NCBI GenBank assembly: GCA_025594325.1
Contig: JANHCV010000002.1
Span: forward strand, 1,240,001-1,304,000
Direction: 5' to 3'
Length of the DNA: 64,000 nt
Source of the DNA: Blastocladiella emersonii ATCC 22665
Taxonomy: Eukaryota > Fungi > Blastocladiomycota
Under the pieces are notes generated by a model that saw only the letters and a program-made list of their open reading frames with translations, did not search any database and had not been told where the DNA came from. The position numbers were made by a program, and so were the translations under genes. Positions 19,230-28,171 of this stretch are shown here, in pieces (the first letter of the stretch is position 1; the number at the start of each line of letters is the position of its first letter).

Positions 19230-20295
19230 CGGGGGAGACCTGCTGGCCGTGCTGACCGACACGTCGCGCCCCGCGGCCTCGCAGGATCAAGTCGTCGCGC
19301 AATCGGGCGCCCGGGACTTCCCGTGACTCGCCCCGGCCGAGCCCGCGCGCCCGCGGCTTGCGCTCGCGTCACGCCGTGGCGCACGCAAGCGCGCTCGTTC
19401 GCGGTCCTCTGCCGCCGAGCCGAGTCGCCACGTGCGGGGTTGACTCGACGCGATGCCGATGCGACCCGCGTCCATCTCGGCCGTGACCACGCTCGCTTTC
19501 TCTCGCGCGAGGGCCCTCACGTCGCCGTGCGCGATCACTGCCGGGCCGGCTCGGGTCGGAGAGCTGCTCCAGCGGCGCACCACCGATCCGGCCATCCTCG
19601 TCGATGAGTCTGGCCCTTGACTGGCGCGTCCTCGACGACAAAGGTCCGTTGAGCTCCCGCAACATCGCGTGGGACGCTGGTGCCGAGAGCAGGCGCGAGA
19701 CAAAAAAGGGGAGACAGCGGCGCACGTGGCTCGGCCACCGGGTCACGCGATGCTCGACGCACCAGCGATTTTCACTTTCCGCGCTGCCGCTGCGAGCGGT
19801 CGGCCGGCGGCCGGGCTGGGCTGGCTGGCGCAGGCGGCGGGCGAGCAGGCACCGTGCGTGCCGTCCAAAGCGCCCAGTCTGAAGGGGACTTGCTTGGCCT
19901 CCCCACGCCTTCTCGTATGTAACTCTTGATGCAATGGACTCGGATGCGGACGGTGGCGGGGAAGAGCGGGGGAGCAAAATTTGGCGGCAGCGCGGGGTGG
20001 CGCTGCTGCACCTTGTCGCAGCAGGCGGCCGAGATTACGACGTGGGCCGGCCGCTCGCCAACTCGATGCCGATGCACCAACTCGGGATGGTCGTCGCCCA
20101 ATTTCTCGCCGGCGAGACCACGGGCGCGGGTTCCATCGCCATCTCGCCGCTCGCCCGCCCATCGTCCGCCCCCGAGATCGTCGCGGCCGTGAGTCGCTCG
20201 GCGCAGTACGACTGACCGCACGCACTCCCGCAGTCCCACCCCCTTCTTCTCTAGCATTCCCACTCCACCCCGGCAACCCGACGCCTTCGCCCACG

Positions 20296-21474
20296 ATGCG
20301 CCAGACGTCGATTGCCCGCGAGTACGCGGACGTGAACCCGACCATGCCGCAGAGCTACTGGGACTACGACAACCTCGTGGTCGAGTGGGGGCTGCCCGAC
20401 AAGTACGAGATTGTGCGCAAGGTGGGCCGCGGCAAGTACTCTGAGGTGTTTGAGGGCATCAACATCAAGAACGGCGAAAAGTGCGTCATCAAGGTGCTCA
20501 AGCCCGTCAAGAAGAAGAAGATCAAGCGCGAGATCAAGATCCTGCAGAACCTGTCGGGCGGCACCAACGTGATCCAGCTGCTCGACGTGGTGCGCGACCC
20601 GCAGTCCAAGACCCCGGCCCTCATCTTCGAGCACGTCGACAACCTCGACTTCAAGGTCCTGTACCCGAACCTGTCCGAGTACGACATCCGCTACTACATC
20701 TACGAGCTGCTCAAGGCCCTCGACTTCTGCCACTCCAAGGGCATCATGCACCGCGACGTCAAGCCGCACAACGTCATGATCGACCACGCCAACCGCAAGC
20801 TGCGCCTCATCGACTGGGGGCTCGCCGAGTTCTACCACCCGGGCACCCAGTACAACGTGCGCGTCGCGTCGCGCTACTTCAAGGGCCCCGAGCTGCTCGT
20901 CGACCTGCAGGACTACGATTACTCGCTCGATATGTGGTCGCTCGGGTGCATGTTCGCGTCCATGATCTTCCGCAAGGAGCCCTTCTTCCACGGGTCCGAC
21001 AACTACGACCAGCTCGTGCGCATTGCCCGCGTCCTCGGCACCGACGCCCTCGACGAGTACCTCAACAAGTACGAGATCGAGCTCGATGAGCACTTTGACT
21101 CGATCCTCGGTCGGTTCCCGCGCAAGCCCTGGATCAAGTTCATCACCAACGAGAACAAGCACCTCGTCACCCCCGAGGCCATCGACTTCCTCGACCGCCT
21201 CCTCCGCTACGACCACCAGGAGCGCCTCACCCCGACCGAGGCCATGCTCCACCCGTACTTTGACGAGGTGCGGCGAAACGACCTCGCCGCCAAGGCCGCC
21301 GCCGACGCTGGTGGGTCCGCTGCCCCCACGCCCTCGGGCCCCGGCTCCGCTACCCCAACCTCGGCCGACCCCGCCGCCGACGGCGCCCTCGCCTTCGACG
21401 ACGACGAGGACGAGGACGAGGAGGCCAACGCGGCAGAAGGCGCCGCGGCCATGTCCGAGGACGCGGCCATCTGA
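20296..21474 (+). CDS. CKA1: casein kinase II catalytic alpha subunit
   Basis: AREYADVN...[62 protein letters not shown]. Intronless, with an acidic tail. Confidence 0.97.
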
Positions 21475-21599
21475 TTTGTCTCTACCTACCTACTGTGTGC
21501 TCTCCCCTCTCCCAGTTCCGTCTGTCCCTGCTCTCCCTCCTCTCCCCCTATTTGCAACCACCAACGCCAACTTATGTAATTTTCTCTTAATCACGCCAC

Positions 21600-22031
21600 T
21601 CACCAGTCGAGCTCCATGCCATCCGCACCCGCCTGCTTCTTCTTCGACTGCTGCTGCTTGTCCACGGCCGCCTGGACCGCGGCCTGAGCTGCCGCCGACG
21701 CGGTCACGACGCGCAGCCCCTGCGGGTTGCCCTTGCGCAGCGCCACCTCGCGCCGCTTGCGGTCGAACGTCCGCCGCCCCGACAGCAGGTCGATGTAGTC
21801 GGGCCGCGCAATGTCGATCTCGAACTTGCCGAGCTTCTTCTTGGGCGCTGCCGCCGCGGCGGCCGAGGTGGGCTTCTTGCCCGCGCTTGTTGGCGCAGTG
21901 GACGAAGCCTTGGTGATGGTCTTGTTCGCCGTCTTGCTGAGCGATGAGGAGGAGGCGGTCGCGGCAGCGGTCGCGGCGATCTCGCGCTGCTTGCGCGACG
22001 GGCGCTTGACGAATTTGGCGGAGCGGCCCAT
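21600..22031 (-). CDS. small basic conserved-looking protein (143 aa), possibly nucleolar
   Basis: MGRSAKFVKR N-terminus, RPDYIDLLSGRR motif, Lys-rich C-terminus, coding-like codon usage. Function not recognised. Confidence 0.65.
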   Translation of the reverse strand: MGRSAKFVKRPSRKQREIAATAAATASSSSLSKTANKTITKASSTAPTSAGKKPTSAAAAAAPKKKLGKFEIDIARPDYIDLLSGRRTFDRKRREVALRKGNPQGLRVVTASAAAQAAVQAAVDKQQQSKKKQAGADGMELDW

Positions 22032-22345
22032 GGTTGATGCGTTGCAGGGAGCGGGGTGGTCGGGTTGATCCGTGGGTGTGATGGGGGAGGGAGCGGTGAG
22101 GCAGGGAGGAGGAGCAACGAGGAAAGGTCGAGGTCGAATCAGCTGATGCTTCGCAGCGTGTGAGACAAGAGTGTCTCGCGCTTGCTCTCCCTCTCTCTCG
22201 GGACCAAGGCCGTACACATGCCAATCGAATGTATACTCAGCGCAACGCTGTTTTCATGCAACAACACACGACCTCCGCGCTTCGGCAACCGCCGTCCGCT
22301 CCTCTCCGCGAGACCCGACCCCCGAGACCCCGCCGCCAGCGCGAA

Positions 22346-22554
22346 CCGCGACCCCGCGCACGCGTCCGAAGGCACCGCCGACACACCCACTCCCACCCAC
22401 GCTTCCGTCCCGCGGTGCCCGTCTCCCTCGCCCGGGTTATCAGGGCGGCGTGCGCGCATAGCGAGCGAGGGAGACGAGCACGCGTTGAGGACGCCGGTGT
22501 GGGATGCTGGGAGTACGCGGCGGAGGCGGTGCCGACGCGTGCGCGCGATCACGG
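22346..22554 (-). ncRNA. candidate structured RNA hairpin, copy 1
   Basis: Imperfect inverted repeat with ~85-90-nt arms. Perfect inner 11-bp stem 22421-22431/22465-22475. Conserved core 22431-22463. Confidence 0.5.
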
Positions 22555-23430
22555 ACCGGGACTGGTGGAGGGTTCCGGTGACGGGCCGAGAGTGTGACGG
22601 CGGGCGACTTGACGTAGAACTCGGCTGCGAGCAGCCTTGAACTTCTTGTCGCCACCCGATCGGTCAGCGAGCTGCACACGGTCGGTTGCGCGTGTCGAGA
22701 CCGCTCCCGAGTGGGTGAGGTCCACGATGACGTTCAGAGGCAAGAGGTAGGCCGTGGGGTGCTGCGGTGTGGAACATTTCGTGGACTGAGTGTAATTGCT
22801 CCATGCCGCTGTCGAGCTCGAGTTTGAAAGTGTCGCAGTCGTTATCTCACGCAAAAACACCCGGATTACGCGGTAGACCTCGACGGATACCAGCCATCGA
22901 ACGTTCGCGTGATCGTGATGCGCGGTGGAGCTTGGCGGGCACCATACGGTCCAGCTTCATGCACCCGCTGGTCGACAATCGAGCGCGACGGTTGAAGGAC
23001 ATAGAACTTGTTCTTGGATCTGTTGAGCACGAGGCGCCGACGATCCTGCGCGCCTGACGCCTCAGGCACTCGGCCTCGCCCGTCCCGAACACCCGCATCG
23101 CGTTATCTTGGGCTGGTCGATGCGCGAGTGCCGGGAGTTGGTGCGCTACTTGTCGGCGAACTTGGACCCTTGGAGCTGGACAGGGAGCGAGGAAGGATGC
23201 GGCGTGCTGGGACCTTTTGACTCCACAAGCGCGCGCGCAGTTCGCGGAGCGACCACCATCAGCCCCCCTGCCACCATACTGGCCGAGTCCGCCTGCAGCT
23301 CTCCCTACCCCACTCAAACTCCATGCATCCGGACGCGAATCGAATGTATACTCTATGCAACGCTTCTGAGGTACCGTCGCCTCGCTTCCGCGCCCGCAAT
23401 TTTCACTTGAGAGACCCAACCGTCAAGACG

Positions 23431-23633
23431 GTCCGCGACCGCGCGCACGCGCCCGTTGGCCCGCTGAGCGCGACGACACGGGTCCACCGAGATCGGTGTC
23501 GGGCAGTACTCGCCTCTCCCACCCGGGTTATCAGGGCGGCGAGCGCGCGTAGCGGGAGGGAGAAGCGGGTAGGCGCGCGCGGGACCGTGTCGCTCGCAGT
23601 GAACGGCGCCGGCGCGTGCGCGCGGTCACAGAC
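23431..23633 (-). ncRNA. candidate structured RNA hairpin, copy 2
   Basis: Perfect 17-bp inverted repeat 23437-23453/23611-23627 plus further paired segments. Conserved core 23522-23554. Confidence 0.5.
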
Positions 23634-24484
23634 CGGGTCCAAGGGTGGGGTTCAGCGTTGAGATCGAGAGTGCGAAGACGGCGAGATTGAGAGTGCGAAA
23701 GCGAGCGCTCGAATTTGACGCGCAGGACGAGAATTGAGAGTCTACGCGGCGATGACGAGTGAGCGAGCGATCGAGGCCAGCGACAAGGGCGCCATGACGC
23801 ACCAAATCACAACGCATTCTCGGCCAAACACGATCCGGCCGTGGATGGTTTGTGAAAAATGATGTGTAGTCTGTGCGTATACGGCGTTCGTCCGTGCTCA
23901 GGCATTGCATTCAGCCAGCACAGCCCGCTCTGCCGGAACTTTGCACAGCACGTCCATAGCCCGCGTCACGCGGCAGCGAAACACAAACCAGGTGGCTCGA
24001 GCTTTCACACTCGGGCCGACATCTGCAGTTCCGCGACCAAAGTATCGGCGTGTTGGGCTCGCGCAGGCTGTCAGTATCTCTCCCGCAGCAGCGGTCGTGA
24101 ACTGCAACGCGTCTCAGGGTCCGACTTCGCCCCCAGCGAACGGCCGCGTTACAGTCTCGCTGGGCGTGCGCTGGCGTGGTTGCCGCTAGTTGATGCAGTT
24201 TTGCTTCATTAGTTTTCAGAGTTCTAGTGGTGGTCAAGGATGCTTGGAAGCGGGCGACGCGCTCGACCGTTTGAAAGACACTCGTCCACTCATCAGCTGA
24301 CCACGCGCCGCTCATCTCGACCATCCTGAGCGCGACCGCAATCGCACCCACGGCTGCGAAAAAAATGTCACACGCAAGCCAACGATCTACATACACTTGA
24401 AACTAAGGAATCGACCCATCCGGTCCACTCTGCTGACGACGCCCCGCAAGCAAAACCTCGATGCGAGTCCCCACCGCCAAAGCG

Positions 24485-24674
24485 GCCCGCGACCGCGCGC
24501 ACGCGCCCGTTGGCGCCGTCGGACCGCGTCAACACGGTCCCGTCGACGTCGACGTCCGTCTACCCCGCCCGAGTTATCAGGGCGTGCGCGCATAGCGGGC
24601 GGGAGAAGCGAGTACACGAACGAAACCATGCCGCTGACCGTGGGCGGCGCCGACGCGTGCACGCGATCACGGAC
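24485..24674 (-). ncRNA. candidate structured RNA hairpin, copy 3
   Basis: The arms pair mainly through G-U on the minus strand. Inner stem cccgcccg/cgggcggg. Conserved core 24568-24597. Confidence 0.5.
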
Positions 24675-25438
24675 CGGGTCCGAGCGTGGAGCTTGGCGTC
24701 GAGATCGAGAGTGCGAAGGCGACGAGATTGAGAGTACGAGTGCGAGCGCTCGAACTTGATGAGTAAGTCGTTGATTGTGAGCCTACGCAGCGGTAACGAG
24801 TTAGCGGGCGTTCAACAACGTGAGCATAAAGATGCCGTAACGCACTAATGCGGAAGACAGCGCTGAGGATGACGGGCTGGACATGTTGGATTCGTGACGA
24901 ACGGCGGAAAAAGGAGCCGTGCGGAAGCGCTGCTTGTCCGCGCCCAGGTGAGCACGTTGGCAAACGAGCGATGCTCAACTGTGCGCTTGCCCTCGGCCGT
25001 CCGTGGCCCGCTTGCTATGGGATCGAACACACGGTGCGTGGATCAAGCCATCGCGCTTGGACCCGGAATGTGAATCGCATGATAATAGTATCGGCGCGTT
25101 GGACCCGTGCTGGTAGTCAGCAGCGCTCCAACTGCATCGACGGTCCTCGACTCGACGCGTCCAACGGCCCGACGCCTTTTCCAGCGAATGGCCGCGTTCC
25201 GGACCCGTTCGCCGTGCGCTGGTGCGGTTGCCGCTAGTTGGTGCAAGTTTGCTTCATCAGTTTTCGGAGTCTAAGTGGTGGTTGAGGAGCGGGGAGTGGA
25301 TGCGGCGAGCGCGACCGCTTGAGCTCAACGCGCGGTCCGCGCATTAGCTGATCGCGCGTCGCTCATCTCGGCTTCCCTGAGCGCAACCACGGTCACAAGC
25401 AGGTCCCAAAACAAAGATATATCTATATATGCTCAAGA

Positions 25439-28171
25439 CTAAGAGCTCGACCCACTCGGTTGTTGCCCATCGAACCCAGTTCTGCCGTCACCCGGCCCGG
25501 TCCCGAAATCGAGCAGCTGCTGGATATATGCCGCGTTGTACATGTCCTGGGCCGACGCGAACCCGAGGACGCCGTCACCACTCCCGCCGTTCGACGCGCT
25601 CGGACTACCGCCGCCACCGCCGCCACCGCCGGGCGGCGACGTGAGGTCGAGCAGCGAGGCGACATCGTGCGCGTCGAGCAGGTCCGGGAACACGGGCAGG
25701 GCGAAATCGGGGCCGAGCGTAGTCGTACCCGCGCCCAGGGTGAGCGGGTCGGTAAGCTCGCCGCCGGGCGGGGTCGGGAAAAAGTTCATCCCCGCGATGG
25801 TCGGCGTGAACGGTATGCCCGACGCGGTCGCGGCTGCGGTCGCAGTGGCCGCGGGGACGGCGCCGGGCTGCTGATGCGGTTGTGGCGGCTGCTGCGCGGT
25901 CGACGGCGCGACCATGGTCCAGAGCGGGAGCGCGGACCCGAGACCCTGCATGACGGGCTGGAACGGCTGCAGCAGCGGCGGCGAGGACGACGACGCGTAT
26001 GCCAAGTTGTTGCTGCCGCCGTTGGCACCGTTACCGGTCCCCGATCCCGCGACGACGGCGGCGGCGGCGTTGGCGGAGACCACGTCGAGGGCGGCGTACT
26101 GGGCAACGAGCTGGTTGACGGTGGCGACCTGGGCGTCGTCGGGGAGGTCGACGAAGTCGAGGACGGCGGTCGCCGAGTCGAGCAGGCGGCGCGACAGCCA
26201 GTCGAGCTGGGCCTTGAGCGCCGACTGGTTGAGCGGGGTGTCGGCCATGGCGCTGTGGATCTCGCCGATGAACAGGAGCAGGCGCGCGAGCATGGGCGCC
26301 ATGCTCGACATGGTGACGAGCAGGATGCGCACGCGGTCGAGGTACCGGAGCGCGCGCTGGGTCTGGGCGCGGTCGGGCGTGTCGTCGTTGGTCGCGAGGA
26401 GGCAGATGACCGTCAGAAGGCACAGGATCTCATGCATGCCCATTGAGCTCGGGTACAGGTGGATGCTACCGCCGAGCCCGCCGGCGACGAGGTGCTCGGT
26501 CGTGTGCATGGCGGCGACCATGGCGTCCTCGAGCAGCGCAAGGTACTGCTGCTTGAGCGGCGACTGGATCGCCGTCGATTTCGTCGACACGAGCGGGCGG
26601 TACAGCGCGATGACGAGCCCGAAATACCGCAGCTGGATCGCGGCGGCCTGCGTCCGCTGCAGCGCGTCGGTCTCGGCGGGGTTGAACTGGAGGCGCGCGG
26701 GCAGCTCGCTGCGGAACTTGGAGAGGATCCCGTGCAGCTCCGGCAGCGTGTAGGGCAGATTTCGGCGCGTGGCGATGCCGTTGAGGGTGCGGGCGACCTT
26801 GGACGTGATCTCGGCGAGCCGCAGCGACCACACGAAATAGTGGTCCTCGTCGAGCAGCAGCGCGTCGTCGAACCGCGCCTGGTTCTCGGGGGTGCGCAGG
26901 TAGATGTCGGTGTTGAGGAAGATCTCCTCGGTGTGCAGCAGCAGCGGGCGGCCCGTGGTCAGCGACAGGTTGGCGTCCATGGTGACGAGCAGGGCCATGG
27001 TCTTGGCCCAGGTGGGCAGGCACGCGTCGATGGCGCGGAACTGCGGCGCGTTGAGGTGCAGGTGCAGGCCGATATCGGTCGCGCACCGACACGCGGTGCC
27101 GACCTGGAGCCACGGCGCCTTGTCGGGGAACACGGAGGCGTGCTGGGCGAGGAGCAGCGCGGCCTGTACGCTCTCGATCGACAAAAAGTGCGCGATGCGG
27201 GCCTGGAGCGCCGTGTTGGCAATGTCGGCAAAGATGCGCGAGAGGAGCGTGGTCGAGTTGACCGAATTGAGGCCCTGCATGAGCTCGAATTTGAGTGTGC
27301 CGCACGCGAGCACGGCGTAGGCGAGATGGTGGTTGCGGTGGGCCGGGGCGGACGCGCCAACGGCCTCGTCGAGCAGGGCGTAGGTGAGGCTGCGGTCGAG
27401 GATCGGGAACCACGCGTGGAAGGTCTCAAAGTAGACGTCGAGCATGCGCGAGGCGAAATGGCGGGCGGGGAACAGGGCGTTCTCGCGGAACAGGATGCGG
27501 CGCGGGACGCGGCCGGCGAGCGGGTTGGGCTTGTGGATGGCGGGCTCGCGGAAGGTGGAGCTCCACGGCTGCAGGGTCTGCAGCCCACTCGAGGACCCAA
27601 AGTTGGTGTAGTGGGTGGCCTTGTTGGACTCGGCGTCAATGTGGAAGAAGAGGGTCATGGACTCGGAGATCTCGTCAATGTCGGCCTGCGAGATGGGCTG
27701 CGACGCGACGCCCGACGGCGGGTGCGCCGTGAAGTGGTGGAGCTGCTGCTGCTGCGGTTGTGGCGGCTCGCTGCCGCTGGGCTCGCTGCTCCCGCGACTA
27801 TCGCTGGCGGCACCGTCGGTCAATGGCGCAGCGGTGGCGGCACCGGCGGCGGCACCGGCGGCCTTCTTGGCACCGCGTTTGGCGCGAGGTTTTGGCGGCG
27901 GGCGCTGGCTCGGGTCGACGTAGTGGCAGTCGGTGAGGCCGTGCTCGAAGCAGTGGCGGCACGGCTGCCCGCCGAGACACTTGACCTTGCGGCGGCGGCA
28001 GTTTTCGCAGGCGTGCGAGACGCGCGACCGCTTGTTGCTGCTGGGCGGCACGTAGGTCGACTCGGGGACGAGCGGCGGCGGCACGGGGCCGGGCGTGGCC
28101 GCGCTGCTGCCGGTCGGCGAGGCCGATCCCGAGCCCGGGCGCGAGCTGGTGTCCGAGTGGTCCTGTTCCAT
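25439..28171 (-). CDS. fungal Zn(II)2Cys6 transcription factor with middle-homology domain (910 aa)
   Basis: RSRVSHACENCRRRKVKCLGGQPCRHCFEHGLTDCHY. YFETFHAWFPILDR, SIESVQAALLLA, ACRCATDIGLH. Low-complexity activation-like tail. Confidence 0.93.
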   Translation of the reverse strand: MEQDHSDTSSRPGSGSASPTGSSAATPGPVPPPLVPESTYVPPSSNKRSRVSHACENCRRRKVKCLGGQPCRHCFEHGLTDCHYVDPSQRPPPKPRAKRGAKKAAGAAAGAATAAPLTDGAASDSRGSSEPSGSEPPQPQQQQLHHFTAHPPSGVASQPISQADIDEISESMTLFFHIDAESNKATHYTNFGSSSGLQTLQPWSSTFREPAIHKPNPLAGRVPRRILFRENALFPARHFASRMLDVYFETFHAWFPILDRSLTYALLDEAVGASAPAHRNHHLAYAVLACGTLKFELMQGLNSVNSTTLLSRIFADIANTALQARIAHFLSIESVQAALLLAQHASVFPDKAPWLQVGTACRCATDIGLHLHLNAPQFRAIDACLPTWAKTMALLVTMDANLSLTTGRPLLLHTEEIFLNTDIYLRTPENQARFDDALLLDEDHYFVWSLRLAEITSKVARTLNGIATRRNLPYTLPELHGILSKFRSELPARLQFNPAETDALQRTQAAAIQLRYFGLVIALYRPLVSTKSTAIQSPLKQQYLALLEDAMVAAMHTTEHLVAGGLGGSIHLYPSSMGMHEILCLLTVICLLATNDDTPDRAQTQRALRYLDRVRILLVTMSSMAPMLARLLLFIGEIHSAMADTPLNQSALKAQLDWLSRRLLDSATAVLDFVDLPDDAQVATVNQLVAQYAALDVVSANAAAAVVAGSGTGNGANGGSNNLAYASSSSPPLLQPFQPVMQGLGSALPLWTMVAPSTAQQPPQPHQQPGAVPAATATAAATASGIPFTPTIAGMNFFPTPPGGELTDPLTLGAGTTTLGPDFALPVFPDLLDAHDVASLLDLTSPPGGGGGGGGSPSASNGGSGDGVLGFASAQDMYNAAYIQQLLDFGTGPGDGRTGFDGQQPSGSSS

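Follow-up and report, generated by a model that had tools for sequence, protein, structure and literature searches.

Hairpins derived from miniature inverted-repeat transposable elements (MITEs) are a known source of small-RNA genes. The window analysed here, a stretch of 64,000 nt of Blastocladiella emersonii ATCC 22665 (assembly GCA_025594325.1, contig JANHCV010000002.1; assembly paper, PMC9730499), holds at 22220..25440 on the minus strand a tandem array of three units, each with one long imperfect hairpin, and several described systems can be set beside it. Precursors of hairpin RNAs (hpRNAs), of fungal microRNA-like RNAs (milRNAs) and of long-foldback microRNAs resemble the array in the placement of a single long imperfect hairpin in a non-coding unit of about 1 kb, in tolerating G-U pairs on one strand, in combining conserved segments with drifting but paired ones, and in local tandem duplication. 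They differ from it in that the stem of the array hairpins is about 110 bp long, that base and apex are both conserved, and that the array is known from DNA alone. MITEs and foldback transposons (Stowaway-like elements, Fusarium mimp, FB elements) share with the array hairpins a palindrome of about 220-250 bp, inverted segments that are conserved at the termini, dispersed copies whose flanks differ and an intergenic site. However, neither a target-site duplication nor a related transposase was seen with the array hairpins, their centre is kept as strongly as their ends, and the array displays block-wise decay, strand-asymmetric mismatches and a 1-kb repeat which includes DNA outside the element.

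Two further systems are close enough to be compared. Replication template switching creates and maintains hairpins and mimics compensatory changes (PMC8794818). The hairpins described in that study by Monttinen and Loytynoja are like those of the array in that their arms change together, with apparent compensatory substitutions, but the mechanism is strand-neutral and does not act to conserve the loop, whereas the loop is the best-kept part in the array and wobble-type mismatches are distributed 21:4 between the strands. TnpB/Fanzor omega-RNAs and transposon-end RNAs are likewise structured RNAs of 150-250 nt that accompany a repeated element; in contrast, no TnpB/Fanzor-like open reading frame (ORF) or remnant adjoins the array copies according to a Pfam search, and the units are non-coding.

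Our preferred reading, to which we would give a probability of roughly 0.4, is that the array belongs to a family of long-hairpin RNAs of minus sense, specific to the lineage, present at this locus in three tandem copies and possibly derived from a transposon. Each unit would give rise to a minus-strand non-coding transcript carrying an imperfect hairpin of about 250 nt, in which a conserved basal stem of about 30 bp and a conserved apical stem-loop of about 33 nt enclose a middle stem that drifts yet remains paired. The family, which has other members at further sites in the genome of B. emersonii, may originate from a palindromic (MITE- or foldback-like) repeat, and a segment of about 1 kb with one copy would have been duplicated twice, first yielding unit 1 and later units 2 and 3. 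Putative roles are those of a small-RNA precursor (milRNA- or hpRNA-like, with base and apex as processing determinants) or of a protein-binding scaffold. We infer both the existence and the role of this minus-sense RNA from the sequence.

Hairpin folding, covariation and strand asymmetry

The three units cover 22220-23334, 23335-24385 and 24386-25440 (all minus strand). A repeat search gave start-to-start spacings of 1091 and 1046 nt, in agreement with the period of about 1.05-1.09 kb proposed for three units in a first-pass annotation of this DNA, and placed the inverted-repeat arms where that annotation had seen them (22346-22554, 23431-23633 and 24485-24674). Pairing is wider than these coordinates, since the consensus fold and a covariance model extend each hairpin to about 240-263 nt. 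In full pairing, the minus-strand hairpin of unit 1 spans 22320..22582 (fold of -150.2 kcal/mol; covariance model score of 215.9 bits on the minus versus 39.6 bits on the plus strand). The hairpin of unit 2, an inverted repeat with 39-nt arms, spans 23407..23659 on the same strand (237 bits, minus), and that of unit 3 spans 24461..24700, also minus (228 bits, minus), with folding energies of -120.1 kcal/mol on the minus and -99.9 kcal/mol on the plus strand.

Stability was compared with dinucleotide-shuffled sequences, a check which had been suggested together with the first description of the hairpins. On both strands, every hairpin was more stable than its shuffles, and the minus strand was the better one each time, with z-scores of -7.15 (minus) and -6.19 (plus) for unit 1, -5.45 and -4.23 for unit 2, and -3.82 and -1.35 for unit 3. 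A single stable hairpin exceeding shuffled sequences on the minus strand, as in hairpin precursors, was found in all three units. As a native control, folding energy was regressed on GC content for 1160 segments of 220 nt across the 64 kb (G+C of about 67%). Unit 1 ranks first on both strands in this comparison, and units 2 and 3 are among the top 10 on one strand each. For a GC-rich genome, the stability of the hairpins is unusual, not extreme.

The three minus-strand sequences were folded by RNAalifold into one rod-like hairpin with 83 pairs at -120.3 kcal/mol, and 91% of the cells in this consensus structure are standard pairs. The plus strand reached -101.8 kcal/mol with a positive covariation term. 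Both sides have changed in 13 of the 83 pairs, compared with 5.9 +/- 1.7 in column shuffles (none of 500 reached 13) and with 0-3 in a slid control, in which partners were shifted by 1-3 columns. When the middle parts of the arms were cross-paired, the left arm of unit 1 scored 19.5 with its own right arm and 1.5-6.5 with the right arm of unit 2 or unit 3; over all combinations, arms of unit 1 scored 0.5-6.5 with arms of the other units, and units 2 and 3 were indistinguishable. The original observation that the arms differ between copies and still pair within each copy is borne out by the 13 compensated pairs and by the own-arm score of unit 1.

To count mismatches within the arms, the right arm of each hairpin was reverse-complemented and aligned with the left arm under a scoring scheme that treats both strands alike. 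A-C or C-A mismatches on the plus strand, which correspond to G-U on the minus strand, occur 6, 6 and 9 times in units 1-3, and G-T or T-G mismatches on the plus strand occur 2, 1 and 1 times. Thus, 21 G-U pairs on the minus strand are opposed to 4 on the plus strand. The bias first counted as about a dozen to about two is real and larger than supposed. The consensus structure points in the same direction (25 vs. 5 cells, or 18 vs. 5 columns; p = 0.01 for columns). Since no such skew is seen among the body differences of units 2 and 3 (A/G 74 vs. C/T 63, p = 0.39), a regional mutation bias is unlikely to account for the skew of the arms. Further, a strand-symmetric DNA process such as arm conversion or template switching predicts equal counts, and 21 versus 4 is therefore not expected from such a process. 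Purifying selection on pairing in a predicted minus-sense RNA would be the simplest reading of the skew. The proposal that the mismatches favour a minus-strand RNA fold is indirectly supported by the G-U asymmetry and by the lack of a matching regional mutation bias; the RNA itself we infer.

Conservation within the array and dispersed copies

Homology between units 2 and 3 covers about 940 bp. What unit 1 has in common with them is only the hairpin zone (22323-22603), about 80 nt next to it, a 16-mer at the unit boundary, and a weak trace of similarity in the body (local scores of 21-24 vs. a null maximum of 15-18). Because its similarity is confined to these parts, unit 1 is considered the older duplicate. 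The bodies of unit 1 and of units 2/3 are near random in comparison. The apical core of about 33 nt (minus strand; 22431..22463, 23522-23554 and 24568-24597 in units 1, 2 and 3) keeps 84-92% identity across the three units, also in comparisons whose unit bodies cannot be aligned. The outer-stem arms (22527..22564, minus strand, with the partner 22346-22377 in unit 1; the equivalents 23415-23453/23611-23649 in unit 2 and 24483-24507/24643-24678 in unit 3) are 83-94% identical between units. The outer stems are about 25-39 nt long, 79-91% complementary and kept between units, i.e., terminal inverted repeats are present. The middle of the arms is poorly alignable, with about 50-75% identity. Consequently, the conserved centre with variable ends, as the array was described at first, has to be revised: the outer stems are as well kept as the centre and the variable part is the middle of the arms.

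The apical core shows little variation and no covariation, suggesting sequence-specific recognition. A 17-nt pattern of the core, CCCGRGTTATCAGGGCG, occurs exactly three times in the 64 kb, with no further occurrence at up to three mismatches. Another conserved block is located 5' of the hairpin in minus sense (23660..23716 and 24701-24757, weaker at 22583-22650; minus strand) and contains two repeats of about 23 nt with CACTCTC. At 23658-23716 (unit 2), it is 83-92% identical between units 2 and 3 and forms their most conserved stretch. The unit of about 23 nt (about GGCGACGAGATCGAGAGTRCGAA on the plus strand) is found twice beside hairpins 2 and 3 (23663-23707 and 24695-24739) and once, degenerate, beside hairpin 1; 24695-24739 was also reported as a tandem-repeat array with period 23 by Tandem Repeats Finder (TRF). 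One paralogous contig carries GAGAGTG just beyond its outer stem. Units 2 and 3 further contain a micro-ORF of 7 codons with the same start and stop positions on the minus strand (24181-24204 and 25229-25252; MKQNCIN and MKQTCTN), which lies within a well-conserved body block (24177-24217, 88% identical) and may be due to chance.

Contigs assembled from three DNA runs on the source sample were matched to 22100-25500 at 80% likeness in search of copies outside the array. The unit bodies have single-copy depth, and bins of the hairpins have about 2-3.5 times the depth of bodies and flanks in two of the three runs (X1, X2). Other contigs (2.8-3.8 kb) match only at the core (22409-22447 and 24565-24603) or the outer stem (22527-22564), with 2-4 differences, before continuing as unlike sequence. 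Matches elsewhere, at 80% or above, consist of blocks of about 35-40 nt only, and approximately three quarters of the matched contigs run on into unlike sequence. Several paralogues lose similarity just outside the outer stem (22559-22564 and 24676), and joint records skip the middle of the arms, passing from 22377 to 22531 and from 24517 to 24646. Hence, the repeated entity is probably the hairpin and not the 1-kb unit, and the hairpins appear to form a dispersed family. The blocks kept between dispersed paralogues are the same as those kept within the array, a pattern which fits a functional RNA family and also a palindromic transposon family with conserved parts required in cis. The statement that the array is the opposite of a MITE was not upheld, given conserved outer stems and dispersed copies with unlike flanks. 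As a side observation, a 35-nt assembler unitig (22409-22443) shows about twice the single-copy depth in run X2, so a close paralogue of the inner stem and core of unit 1, with at least 31 exact bases, should exist elsewhere.

Searches beyond these contigs gave no additional copies. Scans of metagenome contigs (with two patterns) and GTDB genomes returned two chance matches and no hairpin, and 162 kb searched with a covariance model of the three copies yielded these three and no others. No Rfam family matched at gathering thresholds in the entire 64 kb, which is in line with the undescribed RNA suggested in the first-pass annotation. With E-values of up to 10, Rfam (release 15) gave a chance match to H19_3, outside the hairpins, as the sole result for 22000-25600, and even at this limit the array gave no self-cleaving ribozyme family (hammerhead, HDV-like, twister or similar), as a retrozyme-like tandem repeat would carry in each unit. 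The core reads CUGAUAA and not CUGAUGA, the hammerhead sequence.

Weighing the readings

Several observations weigh against a family of minus-sense hairpin RNAs. Compared with native GC-rich segments, the folds are in the top 1% without being extreme, with residual z-scores of -1.9 to -3.1, and unit 2 is equally stable on both strands. The covariation is real, yet it is based on three sequences of which units 2 and 3 are not independent, and it essentially reflects one split, that between unit 1 and units 2/3. The AT-rich motif at the unit boundaries, a potential 3' end described below, is near-palindromic (GTATAC) and some of its instances are located in promoters; it could be a TATA box or serve plus-sense transcripts. 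No inverted repeat was found upstream of the orthologue of the neighbouring 143-aa protein gene in Allomyces javanicus or in a metagenome contig with conserved synteny to a CK2-like kinase, and the hairpin element is therefore not ancient at the array locus. Further, no Dicer was detected in the proteome of Catenaria, another member of the Blastocladiomycota (PMC12663654). One Dicer and eight Argonautes are reported for Allomyces (PMC4290597).

A more specific version of the RNA reading proposes a scaffold-plus-cassette family, in which the invariant base and apex would direct processing or binding and the drifting middle would supply a small-RNA payload specific to each copy. We regard this version as unlikely; if true, an early-diverging flagellated fungus would possess a plant-like small-RNA system with long foldbacks that is specific to its lineage. 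Even in the general form, the hairpins, if expressed, would be a structured-RNA or small-RNA precursor family without Rfam match in an early-diverging fungal lineage. A full-text literature search for Blastocladiella and small RNA returned no paper on the small RNAs of this fungus, judged by title and abstract, and the non-coding RNA biology of Blastocladiomycota appears to be little explored. B. emersonii is under development as a model organism, which makes the hairpin family directly accessible to experiments.

The alternative that survives best, though we consider it somewhat unlikely, is an inert non-autonomous palindromic DNA transposon (MITE or foldback element). The outer stems would be its terminal inverted repeats, a single insertion would have been carried along by two segmental duplications, and the arms would pair simply since each copy stems from a palindromic master. 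Core and outer stems do recur in other contigs with unlike flanks, the similarity of several paralogues breaks off at the same place just outside the outer stem (at the positions given above), and the size of about 220-250 bp, the palindrome and the intergenic position suit a MITE. However, a target-site duplication is not recognizable: no direct repeat was found at the hairpin borders, where the flanks are mutually complementary and continue the inverted pairing, with the limit that the copies are old and represent at most one or two insertions. The middle of the arms has decayed much further than the core and outer stems, whereas a neutral element would be expected to decay evenly after insertion. 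In addition, the 21:4 wobble skew is unexpected for inert DNA and absent from the flanks, a Pfam search of the ORF pieces revealed no transposase remnant, and a tandem period of about 1 kb is not produced by transposition. Should the element be inert nevertheless, the locus would still demonstrate that transposon palindromes can imitate RNA covariation.

Less probable is a functionless quasi-palindrome of DNA, the arms of which are recopied from each other by template switching or arm-to-arm conversion in a manner that mimics compensation. That template switching makes and maintains hairpins is documented (PMC8794818), and both the origin of the covariation in essentially one lineage split and the equal stability of unit 2 on either strand would suit such a process. 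However, being strand-symmetric, it does not predict 21 versus 4 mismatches, and it leaves unexplained why the unpaired apical core is conserved best and why dispersed copies retain just these blocks. We consider it an unlikely explanation of the array.

There is even less to be said for a cis-regulatory DNA module, i.e., an activating or insulating element with protein-binding sites which was duplicated together with a TATA-like box and whose last copy would act in the promoter of the 143-aa gene; we judge this to be improbable. In favour of such a module, the hairpins lie 60-90 nt upstream (minus sense) of the TATA-like motif, a distance of about 200 nt separates the last motif from the start codon (ATG) of the 143-aa gene, and the core shows sequence conservation without covariation. 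The core also contains a GATA-like TGATAA and CCG/CGG triplets and adjoins a gene for a Zn2Cys6 factor, and these motifs could be read as binding sites. Such sites, however, need neither complementary arms of about 100 bp nor compensatory changes or a strand-specific wobble skew, and the element is missing from the orthologous promoter in Allomyces as well as from the loci of paralogous Zn2Cys6 factors.

Lastly, the hairpins had been described as embedded in decayed ORFs with a protein relic, which the coding analysis does not support. In genuine genes of the window, the G+C content at third codon positions (GC3) is 0.9-1.0 and the phase contrast ranges from 0.4 to 0.77, whereas the phase contrast never exceeds 0.15 in the array (22050-25450). 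Substitutions between units 2 and 3 were checked for a 3-nt period in four gap-free blocks, none of which shows one. No Pfam match was obtained for 28 ORF pieces of the array, no homologue was found for the longest hairpin-spanning frame (112 aa, plus strand, across hairpin 2), and none of 10 array ORFs was present in a protein collection searched by exact look-up. In the public annotation, the 3.4-kb stretch holding the array is without any gene call. The array units are non-coding. That they are decayed copies of a protein-coding gene, with the hairpin as a structure of the mRNA or its untranslated region that has outlived the ORF, is highly improbable on this evidence. Open frames of 60-190 codons cover much of each unit, and units 2 and 3 have short peptide-like matches to each other, but frames of such length are to be expected by chance at an estimated stop frequency of about 2% per codon in DNA of 65% GC. 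The units are also unlike the neighbouring 143-aa gene. An origin of the units as pseudocopies of this adjacent gene was rejected separately, since neither protein nor DNA similarity is above that of shuffled sequences.

Flanking genes and the AT-rich boundary motif

The gene of the 143-aa basic protein (21603..22031, minus strand) is located directly downstream of unit 1 in minus sense and is followed by a convergent gene for a CK2-like kinase. On the other side, the stop codon of an annotated gene for a Zn2Cys6 transcription factor (25439..28171, minus strand; Pfam Zn_clus and Fungal_trans) abuts unit 3. The 143-aa protein belongs to no Pfam family according to a Pfam search, but homologues of about 100 aa were found in three Allomyces species and in one metagenome contig of 45% GC (homologous loci include L007, 5564-5869, and L008, 8001-8330). 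In the metagenome contig, the homologue is again followed by a convergent CK2-like kinase, i.e., synteny is kept. For the kinase in the window (plus strand), the mechanical ORF 19981-21474 comprises 497 aa and exceeds the annotated product of 392 aa. As GC3 periodicity starts only near 20200-20350, the true start is probably downstream of 19981. The Zn2Cys6 factor has three paralogues in B. emersonii with 39-40% identity, two of which are on the same contig (1.31-1.43 Mb; loci L004, L005, on the contig of the array, and L006). No hairpin copies were found at the three paralogous loci (68 kb of the B. emersonii genome). The 64-kb window contains no tRNA genes.

The 16-mer mentioned above, the AT-rich boundary motif AATCGAATGTATACTC, occurs at 22223..22238 and identically at 23338-23353, with diverged forms at 24386-24396 and 25417-25435. 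Its two exact copies, beginning at 22223 and 23338 only, compare with 0.08 expected in the window. The corresponding hexamer class (TATATA, TGTATA, TACATA or GTATAC) forms only 20 clusters in 64 kb, and 4 of the 20 are at unit boundaries (22230, 23345, 24388 and 25417). In minus sense, the distance from each hairpin to the motif on its 3' side is 60-90 nt; the motif instance at 22230 is the one situated about 200 nt upstream of the start codon of the 143-aa gene. For most ORFs of the window that are confidently coding, AT-rich hexamers of this class also occur 8-130 nt past the stop codon. They are a candidate poly(A) efficiency element of B. emersonii, and the class resembles the yeast poly(A) efficiency element. 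That copies 1 and 2 share a motif downstream of the hairpin was correctly seen at first, and its interpretation as a 3' end fits the post-stop class, with a TATA box being equally possible. Examples of such rare hexamers after stop codons (TATATA, TGTATA, TACATA, TATGTA) are located at 21573, 25417, 44698, 55300, 31311, 11229 and 18015.

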